A stretch of 62,044 nt of DNA, filler included, from Bipalium vagum (taxonomy: Eukaryota), in NCBI GenBank assembly GCA_037834085.1. It is 3 parts of 3 records of this genome, joined end to end, with 100 filler letters (N's around TTAATTAATTAA, not from the genome) between each part and the next. Parts side by side here need not be neighbours in the genome. Positions count along the whole stretch, not along the records: positions 24,187 to 40,284 come from JBBMKC010127262.1; 2 more parts are not named here. One strand, given 5' to 3'. Below are positions 24,187-40,284 of this stretch, piece after piece. The notes beneath the pieces were generated by a model. It ran no database searches. It saw nothing but the letters and a program-made list of their open reading frames with translations, and was not told where the DNA came from. Position numbers and translations under genes: made by a program. Position 1 is the stretch's first letter. Every line of letters begins with the position of its first letter.

Positions 24187-25368
24187 TTCATATTTCACAC
24201 GCTAAGTAGGGCGGTGAAATATATTTGTTTTTCTTTACTGAGGACCTCTGAGCCTAAGAGCGAAAGGGTTTTTATAAATAATAAATACAATTAATAAAAT
24301 TCGAATCGGTCAAAGTTGGTCTCACTCATTTGTAAAAATAAATTTCGATTTCAATAAAAGTATTAAACTAAAAAATTGTTATCTCAGTTTATTTGATTAA
24401 GCGAACACAACCTATTTCAACCTTCAACCGTTAAGATCTAAGCAAAAATTAAGCTCCGCATTTAACATCTATTTTTCCACGCGTCTTAGGATCTTAACAT
24501 ATACATTTTGTGTTCAGACTGAATATTAAACCAACCATTAGTGACTTCATATATTTAATAATATTGATAACTTTAATTCAAGTTTTGTAACCACTGTGAA
24601 AGCAAATAAAGATTTTTTTTTGTACGAGGGACTCGACGATAACATTAGTGAAGAGTTATTGTTATGGTTGATATAACTTTTCACGAAGTTTAATAAATAA
24701 ATTTCGGTTAATATTTTATTCAAAAAAATTTTTATAAATAATGGAAAATAAGATTAAATAAATAATGTTAGTATCATCATTCTTACTAATATCTTTTAAT
24801 ATTTATTTTATGATCATAAATTTTTGGAAATATAACTTTGAATTCAATGGCTATTAAATTTAGAACTCATTTTTTCCGTTCTTGCAGAGTAGTTTAAATA
24901 AGAAAAAAATTATTATTTCACTAATCATTCCGCAAAATTCTTTCTTGGTTCGGAATTATGAAGCTGCGCAATCAGCGGGAACGAATTATCAGTTATCATT
25001 TAAAAGATTTTGAATTCCCTTCAAAAACTAGAGGAAAATATTTTTTAATGTTGCGAATAAACTTCAATTTAAATATAACACCAATGTTTCAAGTTTCTTT
25101 ATTTCATGATTCTAAATGTTTTATAGAATGCTTTATATCAGATTAAACTGTAACCAAAGGTAGAACCGTTTCTGGAAAATTCTTTATAAATTAAATAATT
25201 AACATTCACATTTTAAAGATCAAATTACATCGTGTGTAGAAAGAATTGTAATGTTATATTTTCCTTAATATACTTAAAATAATAGAATAAAGAACTGGTG
25301 TTTAAAATATAATACTCCAGCCATAAAAATCTTATTTTCAACTTTTTTTATAATCAAAAAACATCGAT

Positions 25369-26281
25369 TTATTTACAATAGCGATCGGCTTTCATCTTTT
25401 CACGTCTATCCAAAAGCTTTTCGTGCAACGCTCCGGTTTTGTTGGCCTTTTTAATTTCTGACTTGTCTTCTTTGCTCAACTTAATTTTTCCGCCCTGAAA
25501 ACTCTGAAATTTCTTTACATAATTCAACTCAGACTTCACAGAACCGTGTCTTTCTTCAACCGGCAGCAAATTAACAGGATCTTCGAACAGGGGCTTGTTG
25601 CATCTCAATTGTAATATTTCTGTTAGACCTACCTTCTCAGCATCGCAAGTCACTTCGATTTTGCCATCTATTTGATTTATACTGACAAAGCAAGAGTTGC
25701 GGCCCAGTAATGCTCCTTTGCCGTCCTCAAAAACCGGAGACCACTGCTCATTTTCACCCATCGCATCTCTAACGGCATTAACGGTATTCTTCAGACCCTT
25801 GGATTCGATACCCATGTATTTATTGTACCTTATTAATGAAAAAATAATTACCAATGTTATGAATTAAAATGTACCCTGTTTTCAATGATATTTTTGAATC
25901 TGATAAAACCATACAAGATAAGATTTCGTCTTCAGAAGGTGGTTCGTTAATTTTATGCGGAGGTCCAACAGAAAAAAGCCCATTGTCCAGAGGTAGTAAA
26001 TAATAACTTTCATTTTCATTACCCAATCCAACAATTTCAATGGCAACTCCTCCCTTACACTTATCATTTGAAATAGTATCCAATTTCCACCATCCACCGT
26101 GGTTATTCATATCCCTTTTAAATTCATTATCTTCGGGCATCAAGTCATCTCTTTTCACAATTTTCTTTTTTGGCTTTCCTATTTTCCTGATAAAAAATAT
26201 TTAATTCAAAATTCACTTTAAATTTTACATTCTATCATTTTTCAATTTTAATTTTCCAGGCTTTACATAATATTCATTCAT
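25369..26281 (-). CDS. FRG1: Protein FRG1 homolog, 274 aa, 3 exons (26281-26229, 26186-25875, 25828-25369)
   Basis: MNEYYVKPGKLKLK...GGWW...LDNGLFSVGPPH...KISLKTGYNKYMG...EQWSPVFEDGK...NYVKKFQSFQ...LHEKLLDRREKMKADRYCK*, hallmark FRG1 sequence; GT-AG introns of 42 nt (26187-26228) and 46 nt (25829-25874) restore one frame. Confidence 0.96.
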
Positions 26282-27334
26282 TTTAAAAAATATCTATGTA
26301 CATATATATTTAAACAAAGTAATGTTTACATTAAGTATTAAAAATATGTATGACCGAAATAATAGACCAATCTTATTATATTTTTCATACAAGTACCGAA
26401 TAAGAATTTATAATTATTTTAATTTGAATCACAAAAATTTGATGGAAGAGGTAAAGCAATTCATTTAAGTATCAATTATAAATTTTAAAGGAAAACAAGC
26501 AAATATCTCATACAAAGAAACAAATCAAACACTATAGACAAAAATATTCTATGGTAACTGGATAAAAACATTGAAATGAAAATTTTATATTTTAAGAAAT
26601 AATATCATCAATCAAAAAAGAGCAGCAACAAGTCTATAGGGTCCTTATAAGGGTCCCCACTATATACAGGTTGGGAACCATTGTCCTAAATCATTTAAAT
26701 ATATATTTATAATTATATATTTCTTTACATACATTGTACTTAATAACTTCTTATTACTTCACTTTCAACGAAAAAGAACCGATCCTGAAGACTCACCGAT
26801 GAACAGTATAAATCTATTGAATACATCATAAATATTGGATCTGAATCGCAGTGTTTTCATTCAGAGCAGATAATCGCTCTAGTATAATATGTTCAAGATA
26901 AAACCCTCTACAGAATATCTCCGCTTAGAGATAAAATGCATCTGGATACCGATGAATTTTTCATATCTTCAAAAAGATTTTACACTAAAGAGAATGGTTA
27001 TGATTACTGATGCTTAAAAATTCTTCCCAGGCTATCGATTGAATAAACGGTCACATCTTACTGCTCTCAACAAGTTCCAAAGTCCTTACTTTGCTAGCTT
27101 TTCGTATTTAACCAAAAAATAGGCAGAAATATCTATAAATTTAGTTGAAAATATAATATAAAAACATAATCTAAAGAATGGCTGAAATCTTATATCGCAA
27201 AGCGAGATACAATATTGATGGGTTATGGAGCAATAATAATGATGATAATAATAGTGGTGGTGGTAATTGTAATAATATTAAAAATAATAATTAATTATAA
27301 TAATAAAAATAATTATATTATTTGGTTTTGCAAT

Positions 27335-27366
<32 letters not shown>

Positions 27367-27434
27367 TTTTAATTAATAATTATAATAAGAATTTTTTTAA
27401 ATTAATAATAAAAAATATTTTTTTAAACAAAATT

Positions 27435-28150
27435 TGCGCAAGAAAAATCCCACCGTGGGATTTTCGGCAGATTAGCTAAGGGATTCCCTGACAGGATTCC
27501 ATTAGCCTTGATGAAACTATCTCGGCGTAGAGATAGTTAATGGCTATTAAGGAAAATAGCCTTCTCTAAGCGTAGGCATTGGTGATCGTTGACCAATCTC
27601 TACGACTATAAAAAGAGACTGCTATTCCCGTCAATTTGCCAAAAAAAATTCAAGGATCAATACAGAAATCAATTCAGGAATCAATTTCGAGACAAATGTA
27701 ATTATATCTGGTTTTCCTCCTAGTGGATATGCCAACGCAGAAGGATTTAACAAGGGAAACCCTAGATGATCTGAGAAGGATCTAGAGGGTGACTCAAAGA
27801 CCCCTTGTCGTTCTTGGTTCATTTACATATTTTGTTTTCGTTTTTAAATTATCATTATTAATTATTGATTTGATTATATTTCTCTTTATTATTAACGTTG
27901 TCATTGAACTTGAAACATTATTTCATTTCACTCGTTGATAGATTTTCAGTTTTGATTTGAATTGATTTTGAAGTTGTAATTGTTGTGATAGAGCGAATAA
28001 ATTTTTATTTCAAGTATTTTGATTCAGGTCTTAGGGATGCGGATACGGTATTGTGGTGGGTGTTTTGATTTGAAAAGGTTTAGAGGAATTACGGACACAA
28101 CAATTTATAAAAAGTGAGGAGTCACGAGCACACGACCACACGTTACTACG
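27435..28150 (+). repeat. Unclassified non-coding (solo-LTR-like) repeat, copy A
   Basis: Shares three colinear blocks with 48449-49010 (opposite strand); structured 5' module and TATAAAAAG at 27607-27615. Confidence 0.55.
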
Positions 28151-28658
28151 TTTAAGTATAATAGTAACAATATTTTGATATAGTAAAATATTTACATATA
28201 AAAATAAATTTTATAGAGGATAAGAATGAAAATGGACAAAAGAAATATTTATAATTTTTAAAAAATTTAATCCTAAATGAATTAATTGATTTGGATGATG
28301 AAAAAATTTTTGCAAATTCAGTTCTTCATCCTACTCGAATTAAAGAACACAAAATACAATACCTGTGAATCAAGAAAAAAGAGTAAACTTATTAATAATG
28401 AGTTATTAGATCCTAGACTATTGGAGTAAATAATCCAATCCCTTGCATTTAATTTTACTTAAGTGATTATAAACTGCTAATTAGAAATCGAAGTAAACTT
28501 TTTAATCAAAGAGTTATTTTTAATTATTCGACAATCGGCTCACTTACAAGCAGTGTCAGACTATATTTATTGTTATTATCATTTACTTAAATATTAAAGT
28601 TTAGTAAGATTTGATATTAAATCTCTTAAGCGATACAAAAATAACTATTTAATTAGAT

Positions 28659-28949
28659 TAGGCATGTCAAACATTAGGCTCATTGCAAGTATACTTGCGG
28701 CCCCACAGACGACTTACAACCATTTTGAAAAAATCAGAGAGACAAAGAAAAAGAGCAATATATGAGGCGTTTTCTTATATCTAGGGAAAGCTTGCCTAAT
28801 AGTATCACTTCTAAATGAAATCTTACATTTTCCAAATCTTAAGTGAACAAAAATGAAAAATATAATAATAAAATTGTAAAAGTAGGGCCATCATGATACC
28901 ACAAACTGATTCCTATGGTCCTCGTGGGAATCTGAGTTTGACATGCCTG
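28659..28949. mobile_element. hAT (Charlie-like) MITE, 291 bp
   Basis: 14-bp TIR (T/C)AGGCATGTCAAAC; 8-bp flanks AATTAGAT / ACTTAGAT (7 of 8 identical TSD). Confidence 0.82.
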
Positions 28950-29928
28950 ACTTAGATGATCACTTGAATTAACGACTATTTTCTTGTTACGTAATTTTTC
29001 TGTTAAAGCTTCTTTAATCGTCTGATGTCTGTATTTATTGGTTCTCGTTTTTACTGTAATCCTTGTAATTTTTTTGAATCAACTGTATTCCTTTTGAGTC
29101 CACTTTTAGTGATGTTTGCGTTTTTTTATTATGAAATGCTTAACGAAAACGCGATATATCAAGATATGTATATCGTATTTTTTGAGAGAGACTTCCACAA
29201 ATAAATTTGTATAACGCATAAAACTGTGCATATATAATAAAAATTTCTTTAGTGTATGAAAAAATTTTCAATATTAAAATCTAGCTTTGTTTTTAATATG
29301 AAATTAGAAGTACAAATATTATAAGTTTTCATATTTATGTTTAAACAAATAAATGAAATATACATTATAAATGAATATAGAATTTTTATCCATTACAAAT
29401 ATAACCTTCAACAATTATACTAAGTGTATCAAAAAATATTACCAACAGTATATTCATATTATTTTTGCATTTTCTATATAAGCTTAATGTTACTATTATT
29501 AGATTTTACTTAGAAATTATTCAGTATAAATTTAATTTTAGTAACTTTATGTTACTGATTGATTTTTTTAATCTTCAAAATGATTATTTTTAAATTAATT
29601 ATTATAATACTTTTATATTTAATAATGTTGGGTTCTAATATTATTAATGATTTTTTTCAAAAAGCCATGGGGATTTGATACATTAGGTTAATAAGTTTTT
29701 TGACAATCGTGTGGACATAGGTTTCAATCGGAATATATATATCAGCGTGGAGATTGAGTTTGAATAATGGCTATTAGAGAAAATAATCGTCCCTAACCTA
29801 ACCTTTTTACTATTTCATTTTTTACTTAAATTTATATTCCTGAATCTCAAATTTTTACTTATACCTTTAATTTTTTTCTAAAATATTATAACCACATCAA
29901 TTTATATTTAATAAAAAGGGCTTAATCA

Positions 29929-30415
29929 CTGATAGAGAATAAAAGCCGTTATATTTTTCTCATTGATATCAAATGTCCGATGGATATCCTGGAAAATTTC
30001 AGGAATTCAGATGAAGACAGTTTAGCTAAATATGCAGATCTTTGTAATCGACTTCAGATGTTGAAGCCTGATTACAAAGTTGTACTGCAGACATGCATAA
30101 TTGGGTCCCTAGGAACAGTACCACCAAAAACAGTTGATGTATTGGAGAAAATCGGTGTACGGAGGTAAAAAATTGGTCCACTTCTCAAGGAATGTGCAGC
30201 TTCAAATATTGAATACTCGGCAAAGATTTGGCAGTACCATGTTACAGGAATCCTGAAATCTATCTAGAAATGTGATATTCCCCGATGTCGACAAAGCTGA
30301 GCGAAGAAGGCTGAAGCAAAATTTCACAAAAGTGAAGAGCTCATCTGACAAAAATCCATGTAGATCTACTGTATCCTGAAGAAAAAACTCAAAATTATTT
30401 TTATTAAATAAATGT
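29929..30415 (+). mobile_element. 3' fragment of an RLE-encoding non-LTR retrotransposon (NeSL/R5-like)
   Basis: LIDIKCP...AKYADL...IIGSLGTVP...LEKIGV..*...YSAKIWQYHVTG (29929-30267) is the restriction-like endonuclease C-terminus; one in-frame TAA; short 3' UTR ending near AATAAA. Confidence 0.82.
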
Positions 30416-31349
30416 TATATATAAATAGTTAAACAAGGCAGTTAGACAACACATGGGTATTTCTGTAAGTCATAAAAAATCGCTTCTTTTCGGTACAAAA
30501 AACATTGTCCAAAATCTTTGGTAGTTTTATTTATGGGGATTGTTTTACTTTTGTTAGGATTTTTTTCTTTTAAATGTTCATTTTTCAATCCGAAATATTC
30601 TCCAATGATGAAAAGGTTTTCAATAGTTTGTTGCCTCTTTATACAGAAATTTTGCAATCAACCTCAAAAAAGAAAAATATTAATGTCAATAATTGCTGTT
30701 TGTAACAAGGCCCGGATATTTATTAAAATAGTTTTAAAAGATTAAATAGGAAAAGTACACTTTACCGAACTTTCTTTTTTATTTTTATTGTTTTTCCCGT
30801 AACCTAATGGTAGAAAAAGACTGAAAGAAGAAAAAAATGTATATGAAAATATTTTTTAAAAAATCTTTTTTTTTCATTTTTAGTGGGGATAAAAATAAGT
30901 AATGATAAAAGAAATATTACACAACTAAATTTCTTTTGGACATTATTTTCTATTTACTGATAATTATTCATCTTGATAATTATCTAATCCAATGACCCTG
31001 CTTCTCTTCTGAAACATACATTTGTCCAATTTTTTTTGTTTACCTTATTAGCTATCCTAATAGAGGATTGGAAAATAAGTTCTGTCCGCAAAATATGTAT
31101 TAGATAAAATATTGTACAACATCAGAATATAAGGTAAATAACGTGATAAGTTCTGCCATAAATCTTGTAATTCGATTGATTAGTAATATGAAATCGATTA
31201 TTTTGCTCTGATTTTTATTTTTGTAAGTTATAATACTTTTAATTGTAGTAATGAGATTTATCAAATATTTACGAGATTTATTTTTGTTGGAAAGATAACA
31301 TGAATTCTGCTGAAATTATGACTAAGATTAATATGGGTGCTTGAAAGTG

Positions 31350-31570
31350 AAATGGTTAATGAATGAATATTAAAGAGATGGATACCAATGTTTAAACATG
31401 ATGGTAACAATCAAACTTTTTATTGTTAGCATGATAATGCGAAATGATATGTAGTCCGACAATCCCTCCTAAATATTTTCACACTTGATTCTACTATAGT
31501 TCCTCACTTCTATACTCTTCAGACCTGTGACTGTCTGCTTTTATTTGTTCTCCTCACAACATAATCGTTT
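31350..31570 (+). mobile_element. Mariner catalytic-domain relic
   Basis: LL*HDNAK...PH..YSSDL...FYLFSS across frameshifts. Confidence 0.55.
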
Positions 31571-31619
31571 AAGGCCAGATGAAATTCATTTTTTGGTTTT
31601 AGTAACTTCAGATAAATAG

Positions 31620-31890
31620 TACAACATTGTTTTGATGCTCACACCAAATCTTGTTGCCAATTCTGACGAAGATTGGAATGAACTCATTTTAAGCCATGCT
31701 TCAATTCATTATTATTAGCCTTTATCTCAGGTTAGCCTAGTGGGTGATGAATAAGATAAATTTTCTCCAAACGGAAACGACTACACCTATTGACCTTTAT
31801 ATTTGTTGATCATTTTCCATCCAAACATTTATGTTTCCAAGGCGGAACTCATTCAAAAATGCTTCTTAATTTATAATTTTCCATATTCAG
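31620..31890 (-). mobile_element. Mariner N-terminal relic (very degraded)
   Basis: Minus-strand fragments YEFRLG..., SSSELATRFGVSIKTML. Confidence 0.45.
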
Positions 31891-33614
31891 CTAAAAAGAC
31901 GATTTAATTCAGATAAACAAAGAAAATATTTTAAATGAAAATTAATATGAAATAATAATTATTAATGATGTGTTCATAAAATTAAACCATAAATAATACG
32001 GTAGCTTAACAATTGATTTTGTAATATGCGAGAGAAATGCTGAGTTTAATAAACGCAATTTCGAAGGCAAACATCTATTAATTATAATTAATAATAATAA
32101 TTACAGTACCTGGCTATTGAAATAGATTAGAGTATTATTTTACAAACAATGGGGTAACCATAAAGCATAAGTTAACGTCGGCCATGATAAAGAAGACACT
32201 AGCTTGGGGACTGAAATACAAACACTACGGAGACACACTTTGGTCAAAAGTAAATAAAAATTTATTTTTACAAAACGATTTTCATTAAATCGGTTTAATT
32301 TCTTACGATTGAAAAAAAATTTCTTTGTTGTTTGAGTCTATTTCCTGTGGCCAGGTTCTGTAATAATAATATTTAAATTTATCCAAATATTAAGATTCGG
32401 TATTACTATATTTTTGAATAATAATTAATCTATAATAATAGGTAAATGGCACATAATTCTTATTTATTTAAAAACATTTTACCTAGATGGACCATAAATT
32501 TTAAAATATTAATCAATTAAATAAATAATAAAGTGAAAATAAAAATGAAAAATAGATAATTAATACTTGAATATAAATTATTAAACATAGTGAAATCAAA
32601 ATAGAAGATCCACAGTAAGTAACCAATGTGTATATTACCAGGACGATATGAAAGGAAGAAGAAGGATATGTCAGAAATAAATTAAAAATCTCTTCGTAAA
32701 GCGAAAAGAGACAAGTTTATAAAGCATTGTTTCAAAAAACAATATCAGTGTGAAATGTAGGTTTCTGACGAACAGAAGATATGTATCCTGTTGAGAGATG
32801 ATCAAAGCTAAAGACAGAGATCTTTTCCTTTGAATGAAACAGCTGAGTCGAATAGTGAAATAATGATGAAATTACGGATGGATAAAAACATCTTAGTGAC
32901 AATAAAGATAAAAGATATCTGCAAAATATATAATAAAAAAGGAAAAAATATATAAAATCGATAAATATTTATAAAAAGAAATCATATAAAACAAAAACAA
33001 AAACAAAAACAAAAATGGCCTTGAAAATTGAAATGATTGGTTGGGTGTTCATAATTTCTAAATCGAGGAAAGGTTTTTTGTTTAAATAGGCTAACATTAT
33101 TGGAAAATAAAATATTATAATTTTTTAAAAAGGTAAATAAAAGTATTAGGAAATAAATAAATGTCATTAGTGAAATTCTGATTAAAATAATTATACCAAT
33201 TCAATCAATTTTGTAACCTCTTAAAAATAATTTACTTTAAAAGTTTGTTGTTTTAATTCTAATTGAAAATTATTTTTTTTAGATTTAGTACTTCGAGTAT
33301 TTTTATTTGAAAATAATGAATGCATTCTTTGATTAATAAAAAAAATATAAAAAGTATTTTTATAAAAGATAATAAATAAAATATATTAAATAATTAATAA
33401 ATTTATTTTTCACTCTAAATTTTATATTTATATTAATCAATATTTATTGTAATATCCATATAGGTTTTGGATCATAATTTATAATTGACCAATGGTTATA
33501 TCATTATATGTTATTGTTCACAATATTTATCCCATCACTTTTAATTGAACATAGGAATCATCAAACGGGAATTGATATTTTAATTACATCATTTTTAATT
33601 GACCATAAATTTTA

Positions 33615-33937
33615 TGCAATAATTGGTCATTCGACTTGAGGTCTTGAGCCAGCTTTATCTTATATGAATATAAGCCTATGTCATCTTGAAAGATTCACCA
33701 CAATAATGTTAGGGAGACCTGTAATTCCTGAGAGCGGCATCAAATCGATTCATTTGGAATGGTAACATTCATAAGAGAAATGTCGAACTTTTGCATCAGA
33801 CATTTCACTGTTCTTGTAGTCGGATAATTATAACTGCCGAAATCTGTTTTAATACGCGTAACGTTCCCACCATGAACGGGTCTGTGATAATAAATTTGAT
33901 TTTTCTGCAATCCTTGTTCATTTGTACATTGATGCAT
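33615..33937 (-). mobile_element. DD41D (rosa-like, DUF4817 HTH) transposase N-terminal relic
   Basis: MHQCTNEQGLQ..IYY...YNYPTTRTVKCLMQKF...SI*CRSQELQVS..LLW*IFQDDIGLYSYKIKLAQDLKSND. Confidence 0.72.
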
Positions 33938-36900
33938 ATTTAAAATGGCGACAATTAATAAATGTAAACACGGAAATTTTAAAAAACTGAAATTTACTGT
34001 AAGGTTTATATTCAACATAGAAAGTACGTGGGGCACACTTTACTTCCTGAACGAACAACTCTGAATTATAATAGATAATATTTTTAAAACTTCTTTTCGA
34101 ATATATTGATATAACCTTTTATGGGGCTTTGACAATAATCGACTATGTACAAATCCCAATATTGTTTGATTGGTACTAGACCTCTGTGCGCCTTGGATTT
34201 TTGGTTAACCACATTTTACTAAATAAGTAAATATAAAAAATTAAATATTTAAATATTACTATAAAATATAATAATAAATTAAATTATTATTAATGGTTTC
34301 GTATATATAAATTTATAAAATATGACAATAAAACAAATAAATCTGAAATTGATTTGTTTAAATCCAAATTGAGCTCAATTATAGATTTTTCATTTTTCTG
34401 TTTTAATTATTATACGAAAAAAAAATCAAATATAATTCTTATTTATTATTTATTTCAAACTGAAATTTTACAATTAATGCAAAACCAATATTGATTAAAT
34501 TATTAGAAAAAAAACTTTACTAATTAAAACAAAATTAATAAGTGAAATTTAGAAAGTAAATAAAAATTAATCTCTTGTTTAAATTGAGATTTAGAGATAA
34601 GCACGGCAAATTAAATTATTTATAGAAATATTGATTTTTCTTTGAAAATTTTGAAAGAGGATAGCGGGAATTTGTTAACATCTCAACGTTGTGAAAACGT
34701 AAAAAAACAAGTCTTTTTATGGTGGTATGCTGAGAAAATTGAGCTCAGATTTTGCGATAAATTTCTTTTGCAACGCATCATCATTTCTCCTTCGAATTTC
34801 AAAAGATACAAGTGATGAATGCATCTGTATTTAATTTGTTTTAATTTGTAAAAAGAATAATGAAACAAAAGTTGAATGCTGCAACTATAATTCTTTGAAA
34901 ATTGTTTTCTTAAGAAATAAATTTCCGTTTTCCGAAGAAAACATAGCTGGCATAAATGTGAATGCAAAAATGATAAAATAAACAAAACAATCATTACAAA
35001 AAATAAACAAATAAAAAACAATAACATTTTTTTTCATTTTGATTTTTGTGAAAATATTTTGTTTATAATAAGAAAATGAAGTCCGGGTTTTTATGTTTTG
35101 ATTTCTGAGCTGGAATGGTGTGACAATAATTCGGGGTTTCAGTTAAAATTCTACTTAAATTTTTATATAAAAATATTTATTGGTTTTGTTTTAATGGAGC
35201 TAAAGAATCATAAGATTAACATCTTCAATAAAAGAAATTATTTTCTAAGTTAAATGGACTTGATTAATCTCGTAAGATTTAATTTTTATGTAAGTAAAAG
35301 AATGTTCGGAAGATCCATTTCAAAGTCCAACTCTCTTTAGAGAATCTTAATAAGATGAATTGTAAAGATTACATAAAGAAAGGTAAAGAAAAAACTTGGT
35401 TTTTCAATAGGCTATTCATATTCTCATCAGCCAATCAGATCACAGTAATTTATTTAAACAAAAATATTAATTCATAAATCATTTACTCCACAAAGGTATA
35501 GTTTAAAACAATTTCCTGTTATACATTTCTGAGAAAGTGAAAGACTTTAATTATATTCATCTGCACTATTCAATCAATCATTTTCCATAATAATTTTATT
35601 AAATATAGTGAATATTTTGAAATACAATTGTTATGAAAAATAAATAATGTCTTAATTTGAGAAAAACTTTTTTTTAATACTGATATTATCATTTAAGATT
35701 TTTAAAAATATTTTAATAAAAAAATATTTTTTTTATATCAGAAAATAATTGGTAATAATTATTTTTCGTAATTAAAATCATTTAAAAAAATATTATTAAA
35801 ACAACAGAGACATTTGTTTAAATTTTATCCACATTTAATTGTATTCAAAATTAAACAGATAACAAATAAGACGTCTTATGTTATATATTTTATCATTCAC
35901 TTCTTTTCAATTATTTATTTATTCATTTCGTATAAAATAAAAAATAAAAAAATTATATAAATAAAAATATATAAATTAAATATTTAAAATATATAATAAA
36001 TAATATATAAATAAAAATTATATTTTAATGATATAATACACATTTGATATCAATATTGAACAGATAATAATCATTTCTTTATATTAAAATCTACTAAATT
36101 TTTATCAAGCATTATTGTTATGCTCATAGAATAAAATAATTAATTAATAATAATTAATTAAGTACTTGAGGGTAAAAACAGTTCAATTAAATAATATTTT
36201 TAAAATCTTAAAATTAAGTAAAAATGATTTTATTTTTCAGTCTTTTCAAAACAAAAAGTATAAATAGTTATATAAAAAAGATTCGGGCGTTAACCATACT
36301 TGTTTACACAAAAAATGAAGGAGTCAAATGCTTTGGGTTGCAAATCACAAAAAAATTAATAATATAAAACGATGAAATGCAACACTTGTGAAATTAACAT
36401 TATTAATTATAATTAAAATAATCTAAATAAAATAAATATGAAATTATTTTTTTAATATTTTATATTATGAATAACTTTTTATATTTTTATATTATATTCT
36501 ATTTATTTATATTCTATNNNNNNNNNNNNNNNNNNNNNNNNNNNNNNNNNNNNNNNNNNNNNNNNNNNNNNNNNNNNNNNNNNNNNNNNNNNNNNNNNNN
36601 NNNNNNNNNNNNNNNNNNNNNNNNNNNNNNNNNNNNNNNNNNNNNNNNNNNNNNNNNNNNNNNNNNNNNNNNNNNNNNNNNNNNNNTTTATATAATATTT
36701 TTTTATTTCCATTATATTTAATATTTTTAATATTTATTTGTATTAGTTTCTGCTACGTTACCGGCAATTTCTAAAAACAAAAAGTACAATGTTTTTTCGA
36801 TGAAAATAAATAAATAATTTTTAATTTTTATTATTATATATTTAAACAAATTAATGACCTATATTTTGTATTAATTAATTTAATTATTTTTTTTTAAATA

Positions 36901-38324
36901 AAAATTTTAATTTATTGAAATTATTTTAAAAATTTATATTACGCTAAGGATTTAATTTTAATATATTACTTTAAAATTTATTCATAAAATATTTATAATT
37001 TATTTTTTATTATTTAATATAAATTAAGCACTATTCTTTACAATTTGTTTTTAATTTTTTCGAGAACATTTTAAAAGTTATTTATTTATTTTAAACAAAC
37101 TTCGATTGTTGTTTTTAATTTTGTTTGAAATGTCAATAAAATTTACAATTAAATCGAAATATTATTTGTCAATATTTATTGTATAATCTTGAAATAAAAC
37201 CAGAATTAATTTAAAAATTTTATGGCCTGTGAAACTGATATTTTTATTTTTAATTTTAAAAAAAAATAAAATAAAAAGTAAAATTTAATTAATTAAAAAA
37301 TTTTAATTTAAAATATTACTAAATATCGTACTTTTAAACAGTACGGCTTCCAATGTTTATGAGTTATTATAATTATTTTAAACTTTACAAAATTAGAATA
37401 TTTAAAATAAAATAAGCGTAAATATTAAAAAAATTTGAAGTTATTTTTTACATACAAGTTTTTAAAGACGATTGATCAGATAATTAAAAAATAAAAAAAT
37501 CAATAGTAATGGAATAATTAAAACAATATTGATTAATAACAGAAATAAATATTTATTAAAACAAAAAACATAATTAATGAAAACATTATCTCCATTTTGA
37601 TTAACTCTGAATTCCCTTTCTCCATTGATCCCTCAAAGATTTTTGTAAAATTACATGTCCAGTATTCCTTTGAACCTTTCAATATTTTTTTACAAATAAA
37701 TTGTTTTATTCAGTATTTTCTTAATTCATACTAAAAAATATGTAAACTTAAAAGTTAATTTTTACAAATAACATAAATGAACTAAGATCTCTTTTCAGAA
37801 AGAATTAATGAACTGGAATTATTTGAAATATTTTTAACAAATTTCCAACATGACAATGTCTCACTGAAATATTCCATTATTTTACCATGGCCTCTTACCC
37901 TTTGTTTTTATTTTTGTAAAGCTTTACCGTGCCATCTACAATATTACTCTTGTATATTACACATGTATACATTAAATCATCAAATTTCTTAAGATTCTTT
38001 ACTGGGGGTGAATGTTTTGTAAAATAGCTTCAGATCGAGTTCGGACCAATCTTTCGGATATTTGAAATGCAAATGTTGATGGAAATTCTCTGGGTCAGGA
38101 AATACTTTTTCCACACAGTCATACTTTCAGTAGGAATCTCTACAGATATCTGAGATAAGGTATAGTTTGAATTATAAATTTGCTCTAGTCTCTCATCTAG
38201 ATACACATCTAAGATAGTGCAGGTGTGAATTATAATTGAGAATTCATGAAACCGGGCTTAACTATTATTATATTATAACTTATCAATATAAATAAAATTA
38301 TAATTATATAATTATAAATAGTCT

Positions 38325-38490
38325 TTAACAAACTGAACAAAATGATTCAAAAGCTTAAAGAAGAACAGTCAATAGATCAATTACTATCCTATTACATAAT
38401 ACAGATAGACCACACACTGCACAAATGACTGTTGCAAAACTTCAGTATGTAGAACGTGAACTTCTTAATCATCCTTCATACTCATCAGTA
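38325..38490 (+). mobile_element. Mariner catalytic-domain relic
   Basis: ILLHN..RPHTAQMTVAKLQYVERELLNHPSYSS. Confidence 0.65.
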
Positions 38491-39689
38491 TCTTTATTTT
38501 CATTTGATAACATTAAAATTGATTTTTTTTCATTACTATTTTAAAGTTTTCAAACACAGATCTAATATTAAATTGAAACCTAGCTCAGATTTTTAGACTT
38601 TTCATCAACTATATTGTTTGACTATCCAGAAAGCCATAAATCATGAAGAGGATAAAAATTCAGTACTGAACTCCATAATTTCTAAAATTGTCATAGTAAC
38701 TTCTGAGCATAATGCAAAACATATTTTGGCGATTTCTATTTTGTTATTTTCTATGTTTTTTCTTCGTCAACATACAAATAGTTATACTTCACATGAATTT
38801 TGAAATTATGCTCATTATTTGAAATTATATTCAATTTATGATTTAATTGATTAAAACAAGTTTTATATATACTCATTTTCAATAAAAGTGCATAATTAAA
38901 ACTGAACCATATTTTCGATATTTTAATCTATACAATACCTTAAGAGTACCAAGAGAACAACGCAGCTGAAGATACATGATATCCCACAAATGTTCAATAT
39001 GAAATAAATATAAAATAAATAAAATGATCAAGTTATTGTTTCCACTTCTGATTCTTACATAAACTTTGGTTTTATACTGGTGGCATGTAGTCTCAAAATG
39101 TCTTTTAGAAAACTACTTAACGGAAATTAATCAATTTTATTAATGATAATTTTAAGGGTCTTAGAATTTCGTTGATGTTTGGAAAAATATTTAAATTATT
39201 CCTGATAAGTTCAAGTGATAACAAGATTCGAAACCCGTAAAATTGTGAAACACGTTCTTCCCAAAAATCTGGGAATTTCTGTGAAACTTATTTCATTTTC
39301 ATGAAGTCTTACTATTTGACTACTTTCAAAGAGATTGAATGTAATTTGTTTCCTTATTCCATTCATATTGCTCAACGTACTATAAGTACTTCTTATCAGT
39401 AATTATATGCTTATCTATTTAAATGATGAACATACGCAGATTTGGATATCTGAATAAATTATATTGATTAAACAACCCACACAATAATGCTGATGGAATT
39501 CATTAAAATAACCCAAATTTTTAAATGAATAAAACTAAATAAGTCTAAAAAGTCTGAAAACTTAAACTTCTGGAAATAGAATTTTTCATACGAAATGATA
39601 AAAATAAAGTAACAAGATTTACAATATAATAATCTGAAGAATAATGGAAATCTATTGCATAAACACAATGGATCTATTGTGATTCAACT

Positions 39690-39870
39690 CATAATACGAA
39701 CATCAACCTGCAACAACTCATGACTCACAAATTAACAGATCCAGATTTCCAAACTAAGAAACGCTTTGACTTTCAGATGATATGCTAGCCTTCTTAACAG
39801 CTCAGAAAGGTGTCGTTTCATGACAAGACAAATTTACAGGCATAAAAGAAATTATAAATACCACAGTTAA
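39690..39870 (+). mobile_element. Possible non-LTR RT relic
   Basis: ALTFSDDMLA-like motif across a frameshift; weak. Confidence 0.3.
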
Positions 39871-39971
39871 TTCAAATTTCAACTAGCATTTTCGAATATT
39901 TTTTGTAATACACGTACAGTACAATACATTTTTTTCTGTACTCTACGATAATTAATTTCATAATATAACTA

Positions 39972-40284
39972 TTGGGTTGGCAACTAAGTTTGTGCGCTTT
40001 TTAATACAAAAATTTTTCAAACTAATATATTAAAATTATCTTATTTCGATTGTTGTTTTAATAATTAAATCTTGTTAGCGGAGATTGAATTTACAATATG
40101 GATGATTAAAATATGCATTTTCGCCATATCTTGCTATATTATTTTAAGAAAGGTAAGTTATATATTATTTATTTAAATATTATATTATTCTCAAAAAGGA
40201 AAGCAAACCGCGGCGGTACATACAAAATTATGCAAAGTGTATGGAGTTGATGCCTTATCAAAACGCGTATGCCAAAAGTGGTTT
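39972..40284 (+). mobile_element. Mariner 5' end (mellifera-like), transposase start with putative 46-nt intron; cut by scaffold end
   Basis: TA + TIR TTGGGTTGGCAACTAAGTTTGTGCG; ATG at 40098, MDD*NMHFRHILLYYFKKG|KQTAAVHTKLCKVYGVDALSKRVCQKWF after removing 40153-40198. Confidence 0.88.

Follow-up and report, generated by a model that had tools for sequence, protein, structure and literature searches.

A 46-nucleotide intron-like insert with near-duplicate junctions in a mellifera-subfamily mariner copy of Bipalium vagum

Tc1 and Tc3 of C. elegans carry short introns in their transposase genes, and mariners in the strict sense are, to our knowledge, normally intronless. A similar arrangement is found in Minos, where a 60-bp intron divides the transposase gene into two exons (PMC2874221). 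In these three Tc1-like elements a single short intron of the size class typical of the host lies near the 5' end of the transposase gene, all copies are intron-bearing, and splicing has been shown experimentally. Spliceosomal introns whose sequence still clearly reveals how they arose are few. New introns found in Daphnia populations are reportedly flanked by short direct repeats and have been attributed to break repair. Duplication of a segment containing AGGT is an established way of creating an intron, though one that has rarely been documented (PMC3265369, PMC4974935), and proven recent intron gains are rare (PMC4974935). In the Rogers model, which PMC4974935 describes and PMC3265369 demonstrates, the intron corresponds exactly to a single duplicated unit.

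The window analyzed here is a stretch of 62,044 nucleotides (filler included) from Bipalium vagum, and positions 24187-40284 of it are the piece JBBMKC010127262.1, which is AT-rich (about 26% G+C) and has at 39972-40284 the 5' end of a mellifera-subfamily mariner. We consider it about an even chance that this mariner copy bears a private, duplication-born and probably spliceable insert, whose private status, spliceability and underlying repair mechanism we infer from the features described below.

On the plus strand, a TA dinucleotide (39970-39971), which is the expected mariner target-site copy and is present on the 5' side only within the piece, stands directly before the 5' terminal inverted repeat (TIR) of a mellifera-subfamily mariner (39972-40001, the length of 30 nt being taken from Rpmar relatives). 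The first 18 nt of this TIR (39972-39989), TTGGGTTGGCAACTAAGT, are exactly those that begin the Rpmar23 TIR and also match the TIR of Rpmar12, whose first letter is printed W; both elements come from Rhodnius prolixus and are listed in the mellifera subfamily (PMC4678618). The TIR is present as a single copy within 24187-40284. Between it and the ancestral ATG lies a 5' untranslated leader (40002-40097), which could be loosely aligned with the leader of an ant mariner (L002, GCA_000611835.1) whose ATG aligns at 40098. The ancestral open reading frame (ORF) starts with ATG GAT GAT TAA AAT (40098-40112), and residues 1-20 of the homolog align from 40098 through the TAA. Candidate exon 1 (40113-40152) begins at a second ATG (ancestral codon 6), continues with HFRHILLYYFKK and the first base of a Gly codon at 40152, and has 81% identity to residues 5-20 of the best protein match (P0001); the reading from this ATG is MHFRHILLYYFKKG. 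Candidate exon 2 (40199-40284) encodes the rest of the N-terminal helix-turn-helix and ends at the piece edge. The Pfam profile HTH_48 ('HTH domain in Mos1 transposase') matches 40177-40284 over profile positions 8-43 of 50 (E 1.7e-10, 41.3 bits against a cut-off of 24.1). Because the piece edge cuts the ORF after 187 nt, the DD34D catalytic domain would lie beyond 40284, where filler letters follow in place of genome sequence.

Exon 1 and exon 2 were searched as separate queries. Among 1.84 billion representative proteins, 19 matches were detected, 18 of which align over most of the query and are mariner N-termini; the best one, P0001 (61%), comes from an ant genome, and the remaining one, P0003, is unrelated and repetitive, its match being confined to residues 11-32. 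The assignment to a mariner transposase made in a preliminary description of this DNA is thus borne out by the TA, the TIR, the HTH_48 match and the mariner N-termini among the protein matches. The Bipalium copy resembles other mellifera mariners (Rpmar12, Rpmar23 and the ant element) in the first 18 TIR nucleotides, the TA before the TIR, a leader of about 125 nt and an N-terminus of the form HFRHILLYYFKKGK...CQKWF that matches HTH_48, and, outside the insert, its coding DNA can be aligned well with that of the ant copy. Unlike the mellifera mariners that we found, it has 46 extra nucleotides in the helix-turn-helix region and a TAA at codon 4, and its catalytic part falls beyond the piece edge.

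The two candidate exons are separated by the 46-nt insert (40153-40198, plus strand), a candidate GT-AG intron in phase 1 with GTAAGT at its start, AAAAG at its end and a G+C content of 11%. When it is left in place, the ORF from 40113 stops after 45 aa; from 40199 the family sequence resumes in another frame, as (G)KQTAAVHTKLCKVYGVDALSKRVCQKWF, up to the edge at 40284, and exon 2 is open across all 28 visible codons. The predicted spliced junction would join ...AAGAAAG to GAAAGCAA or, in a longer form, ...TTTTAAGAAAG to GAAAGCAAACC. The DNA alignment with the ant mariner contains one gap of exactly 46 columns, 40153-40198, with good identity on both sides, and the related mariner N-termini among the protein matches are uninterrupted at this site, running straight through YYFKKGK; the 46 nt are therefore an insertion relative to the family. 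Exact removal of 40153-40198 restores both the frame and colinearity with homologs, as seen in the ant DNA alignment and in the tblastn segments, which abut on the homolog. It had been claimed that the transposase reads YYFKKG, is interrupted by 46 nt of the form GTAAGT...AG, resumes as KQTAAVHTKLC once these are removed, and thus carries an insert relative to the mariner family. All of these sequence statements were reproduced, and the 46-nt block is the only extra one in comparison with the ant mariner and the related N-termini. We have little doubt that the insert is real in the genome.

Other copies were sought in several collections. The 45-aa unspliced ORF had no exact match in the assembly collection, and pattern scans of the prokaryote genome and viral contigs for the TIR, exon 1 and a conserved exon-2 word gave no match either. 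The sole metagenome match to an exon-2 20-mer (L001, 1424-1443) lies on a bacterial-looking contig without a mariner around it and was discarded as a chance hit.

The two junctions of the insert lie in a direct repeat. Copy 1 (40135-40157, plus strand) extends from the end of exon 1 into the insert by 5 nt, codes for YYFKKG and includes AG/GT (the slash marks the junction); copy 2 (40181-40203, plus strand) comprises the 3' end of the insert and the first 5 nt of exon 2 and reads, in the exon-2 frame, YYSQKG, a decayed YYFKKG. The copies are identical at 19 of 23 positions with a start-to-start spacing of 46. By scanning all of 24187-40284 for 23-mers with at least 19 matches at offsets 30-100, we obtained a background of about 1.3e-4 per position and offset, most of it in microsatellites, and at offset 46 the junction repeat is the sole 23-mer match of 19/23 or better. 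The low scan rate and this single match at offset 46 indicate that the repeat is real, and a chance resemblance of the junctions was ruled out on the same basis. The near-identity of the junctions (19 of 23) given in the preliminary description was hence reproduced and proved unique at this spacing in the piece. Most of the background matches in the scan come from a zone of short-period tandem repeats at 27264-27340. At the protein level, tblastn aligned 40110-40157 with homolog residues 5-20 and, in a different frame, 40177-40284 with residues 12-47. Both segments cover residues 12-20, which the DNA therefore encodes twice, once in each frame; the downstream version, ILYYSQKG, is a decayed ILLYYFKKG.

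The similarity at spacing 46 ends with the 23-nt repeat and drops to background level beyond it, and the duplication therefore explains only half of the 46 nt. The other half is an AT-only filler (40158-40180, plus strand; 23 nt, 0% G+C), which holds a third copy of TATATTATT at 40161. This word was found three times (at 40135, 40161 and 40181) as exact-word repeats and in local alignments, and TRF reports a period-15 array at 40158-40189. Within 24187-40284 no further copy of the filler was detected at up to 3 mismatches. An introner- or MITE-like insertion was considered and ruled out, given that there is no second filler copy in the piece and that a 23-nt 'target duplication' fits no known transposon class.

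Among the four differences between the repeat copies, the three that lie away from the junction are all on the downstream (insert) copy, where TTT has become TCT and AAG has become CAA (F to S and K to Q), one of them removing a competing AG. The upstream copy keeps the consensus FKK, and F is found at that position in most relatives keeping the YYFKKG stretch, with a few decayed fragments differing. This insert-side bias mildly favours selection for splicing, on three sites only and with a probability of 1/8 by chance; error-prone synthesis of the new copy could give the same bias. The four differences over 23 nt point to an event that is not very recent.

The host introns available for comparison are the two of an FRG1 gene in the same piece. 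This gene appears complete and has three exons on the minus strand (25369-26281), with its ATG at 26281 and its stop, TAA, at 25369-25371; the Pfam FRG1 match has an E-value of 7e-41. Intron 1 (26187-26228, minus strand; 42 nt, GTAAAA to ATCAG, 14% G+C) is flanked by ORFs that carry the FRG1 domain, and across intron 2 (25829-25874, minus strand; 46 nt, GTACAT to ATAAG, 17% G+C) the Pfam FRG1 profile continues from one ORF to the other at profile position 46. In the protein search, the best FRG1 matches are 72-78% identical (ENA and metaclust entries), followed by spiralians at about 50%. On an ENA metagenome contig, the 72%-identical relative has its FRG1 sequence in two neighbouring ORFs with 56 nt between them, which fits the same split.

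The mariner insert, with 46 nt and 11% G+C, is close to these FRG1 introns of 42 and 46 nt and 14-17% G+C (exons have about 41%), a comparison that rests on the two introns of the piece and hence on a very small sample. Its donor site is AAG/GTAAGT (40150-40158) and its acceptor site AAAAG/G (40194-40199); past the donor site the insert has no AG except the terminal one, and use of the next AG, 5 nt downstream, would break the frame. A TTTAAAT is located about 20 nt before the AG and TTATTCTC precedes AAAAAG, again with two host introns only for comparison, and neither a branch site nor a pyrimidine tract stands out beyond the general AT-richness of the insert. Both the size match to the FRG1 introns and the spliceosomal character that had been attributed to the insert hold with regard to GT-AG ends and to local intron size and composition. 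The junctions of FRG1 intron 2 also look alike (AGG/GTACAT at the donor and AAG/GTACAA at the acceptor), which may reflect a preference for AG/GT proto-splice sites in this genome. The junction-proximal part of the argument for duplication in the mariner is weaker on this account; the upstream part, based on TATATTATT, is not.

With respect to the state of the copy, the ATG at 40098 and the TAA at 40107-40109 confirm the stop at codon 4 reported previously. In FRG1 the conserved C-terminus is followed directly by TAA, which shows that this codon is a true stop in this genome; a ciliate-type code (TAA = Gln) that would rescue codon 4 was ruled out for the same reason. The ATG at 40113, two codons past the TAA, could start a protein that lacks only five poorly conserved residues, and the copy is therefore damaged but not certainly dead.

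Apart from FRG1, the piece is mostly transposon debris. Just upstream of the mariner lies a Tc1-like transposase remnant (38879-39375, minus strand), in which an ORF matches HTH_38 weakly (E 0.02); another ORF of this region contains an IEHLWD motif, which we take to be typical of Tc1-family C-termini and for which Pfam gave no match. A 62-aa ORF at 29980-30168 (plus strand), ending in ...IIGSLGTVPPKTVDVLEKIGV, presumably resembles the C-terminal tail of some retroelement ORFs; it has no Pfam match. The only assembly gap of 24187-40284 is one sized N gap at 36518-36686, as in a scaffolded draft, and the region around it (35200-37200) is extremely AT-rich, with G+C as low as 11-18%.

Regarding its origin, it is very likely that the insert arose by local duplication. 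The claim that it was born by tandem duplication stands in so far as part of it copies the adjacent exon end together with AG/GT, but only 23 of the 46 nt are repeated and the middle 23 nt are AT-only. The repeated segment contains AGGT in the form AAAG/GTAAG in copy 1, and the corresponding sequence in copy 2 is AAAG/GAAAG. An intron consisting of one duplicated unit, as in the Rogers model, would have its start repeated at the start of exon 2; here GAAAG agrees with GTAAG at four of five bases and no match follows. The case is like the Rogers-type gains in ATP2A1 (PMC3265369) and the potato RdRp gene (PMC4974935) in that the upstream repeat provides an AG/GT donor, the downstream repeat provides an AG acceptor, and removal restores the message; it is unlike them in its partial repeat with AT-only filler in between and in being a candidate intron. 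The intronless form of the site is found in distant relatives (the ant element and others).

The order of repeat, filler with a partial third copy, and repeat looks to us like replication slippage or templated, error-prone repair of a break, and it is the third TATATTATT copy in the G+C-free filler that indicates stuttering or templated repair. We propose that a mellifera-type mariner copy gained 46 nt inside the sequence coding for the N-terminal helix-turn-helix, when the 23 nt ending in ...AAAG/GTAAG may have been re-copied 46 nt downstream by a stuttering local duplication, with AT-only filler between the copies that would have restarted on TATATTATT. The event might have been replication slippage, or templated, error-prone repair of a break, and breaks are frequent in cut-and-paste elements. 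The insert starts with a consensus donor (AAG/GTAAGT) and ends with AG because the copied segment holds a latent AG/GT within its Lys-Gly-Lys codons (AAA GGT AAG), and GT...AG ends result from any duplication with its junction at AAA GGT AAG. The duplication does not by itself account for the T at donor position 6 or for the loss of the inner AG. If the copy is transcribed, the spliceosome would probably remove the insert and restore the frame; we put the chance that a transcribed copy is spliced here at about one half.

As an alternative, the insert could be a working spliceosomal intron common to a mariner lineage of this genome that is, or until recently was, active; a single duplication of the AG/GT exon end would have created it, and selection would have kept and tuned it since. 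Such an intron would account for the perfect donor, the single usable acceptor and the host-like length and composition, for the restoration of frame and family colinearity upon removal, and for repeat differences that lie only on the intronic copy and in one case abolish a competing AG. Exon 2 is intact as far as it is visible and scores above the HTH_48 cut-off, and short introns do occur in other Tc1/mariner transposase genes, such as the 60-bp intron of Minos (PMC2874221). However, the single visible copy is incomplete and has a stop at ancestral codon 4, the related mariner N-termini and the ant element are uninterrupted at the site, and branch site and pyrimidine tract are no clearer than AT-richness in general would make them, so that we regard this possibility as doubtful. 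It is accordingly a tentative suggestion that a mellifera-type mariner lineage in a short-intron host might have gained a working 46-nt intron in its helix-turn-helix region in one repair event.

The same stop at codon 4, the decayed transposon material all around and the ease with which an AG/GT duplication produces GT...AG ends (the family's Lys-Gly-Lys motif supplying AAAGGTAAG) would also be expected if the insertion were dead, being never spliced or never transcribed, and its resemblance to an intron a by-product of duplicating AAAGGTAAG in an AT-rich genome that would be of no consequence biologically. This appears unlikely to us, since a 46-nt GTAAGT...AG unit would probably be recognized upon transcription in genomes with introns of about 40-50 nt, as general knowledge of intron definition suggests, and since duplication explains neither the sixth donor base, T, nor the lost inner AG. 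An assembly artefact, namely a mis-joined or stuttered AT-rich contig end inside a repeat family, 86 nt after the insert, is very improbable. It would be in keeping with a piece that ends inside the element, with the sized N gap as the mark of a scaffolded draft, and with a low-complexity insert in which TATATTATT occurs three times; however, 4 of 23 positions distinguish the two copies of the repeat, and past the insert the sequence reads in frame for another 86 nt. Simple stutter or collapse artefacts usually give identical copies.

Compared with the systems described at the outset, the insert shares with the introns of Minos, Tc1 and Tc3 its position near the 5' end of the transposase gene and its host-typical size class, whereas those are Tc1-like elements and the present candidate is seen in one copy of a mariner in the strict sense. 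Like the Daphnia gains, it has direct repeats at both junctions with unrelated filler between them; unlike them, its repeat is longer (23 nt, imperfect), and it sits in a copy of a transposon, not in a cellular gene under selection. The mariner case would be a variant of the AGGT-duplication route, consisting of duplication plus filler inside a transposon. Should the insert be confined to a single decaying copy, it is an ordinary indel, useful as an illustration of how readily intron-like units form in AT-rich genomes with short introns and as a caution for gene prediction there, no more. If it is spliced and carried by transposing copies, it would show that repair of a break within a cut-and-paste element can generate an intron in a single step and that a mariner acquired by horizontal transfer can adapt to a host whose introns are tiny. 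If the insert does belong to a mariner lineage, it would be a rare, still legible record of intron birth in a mobile element able to spread the new intron, and its intronic repeat copy would since have lost both its coding sense and a competing AG.
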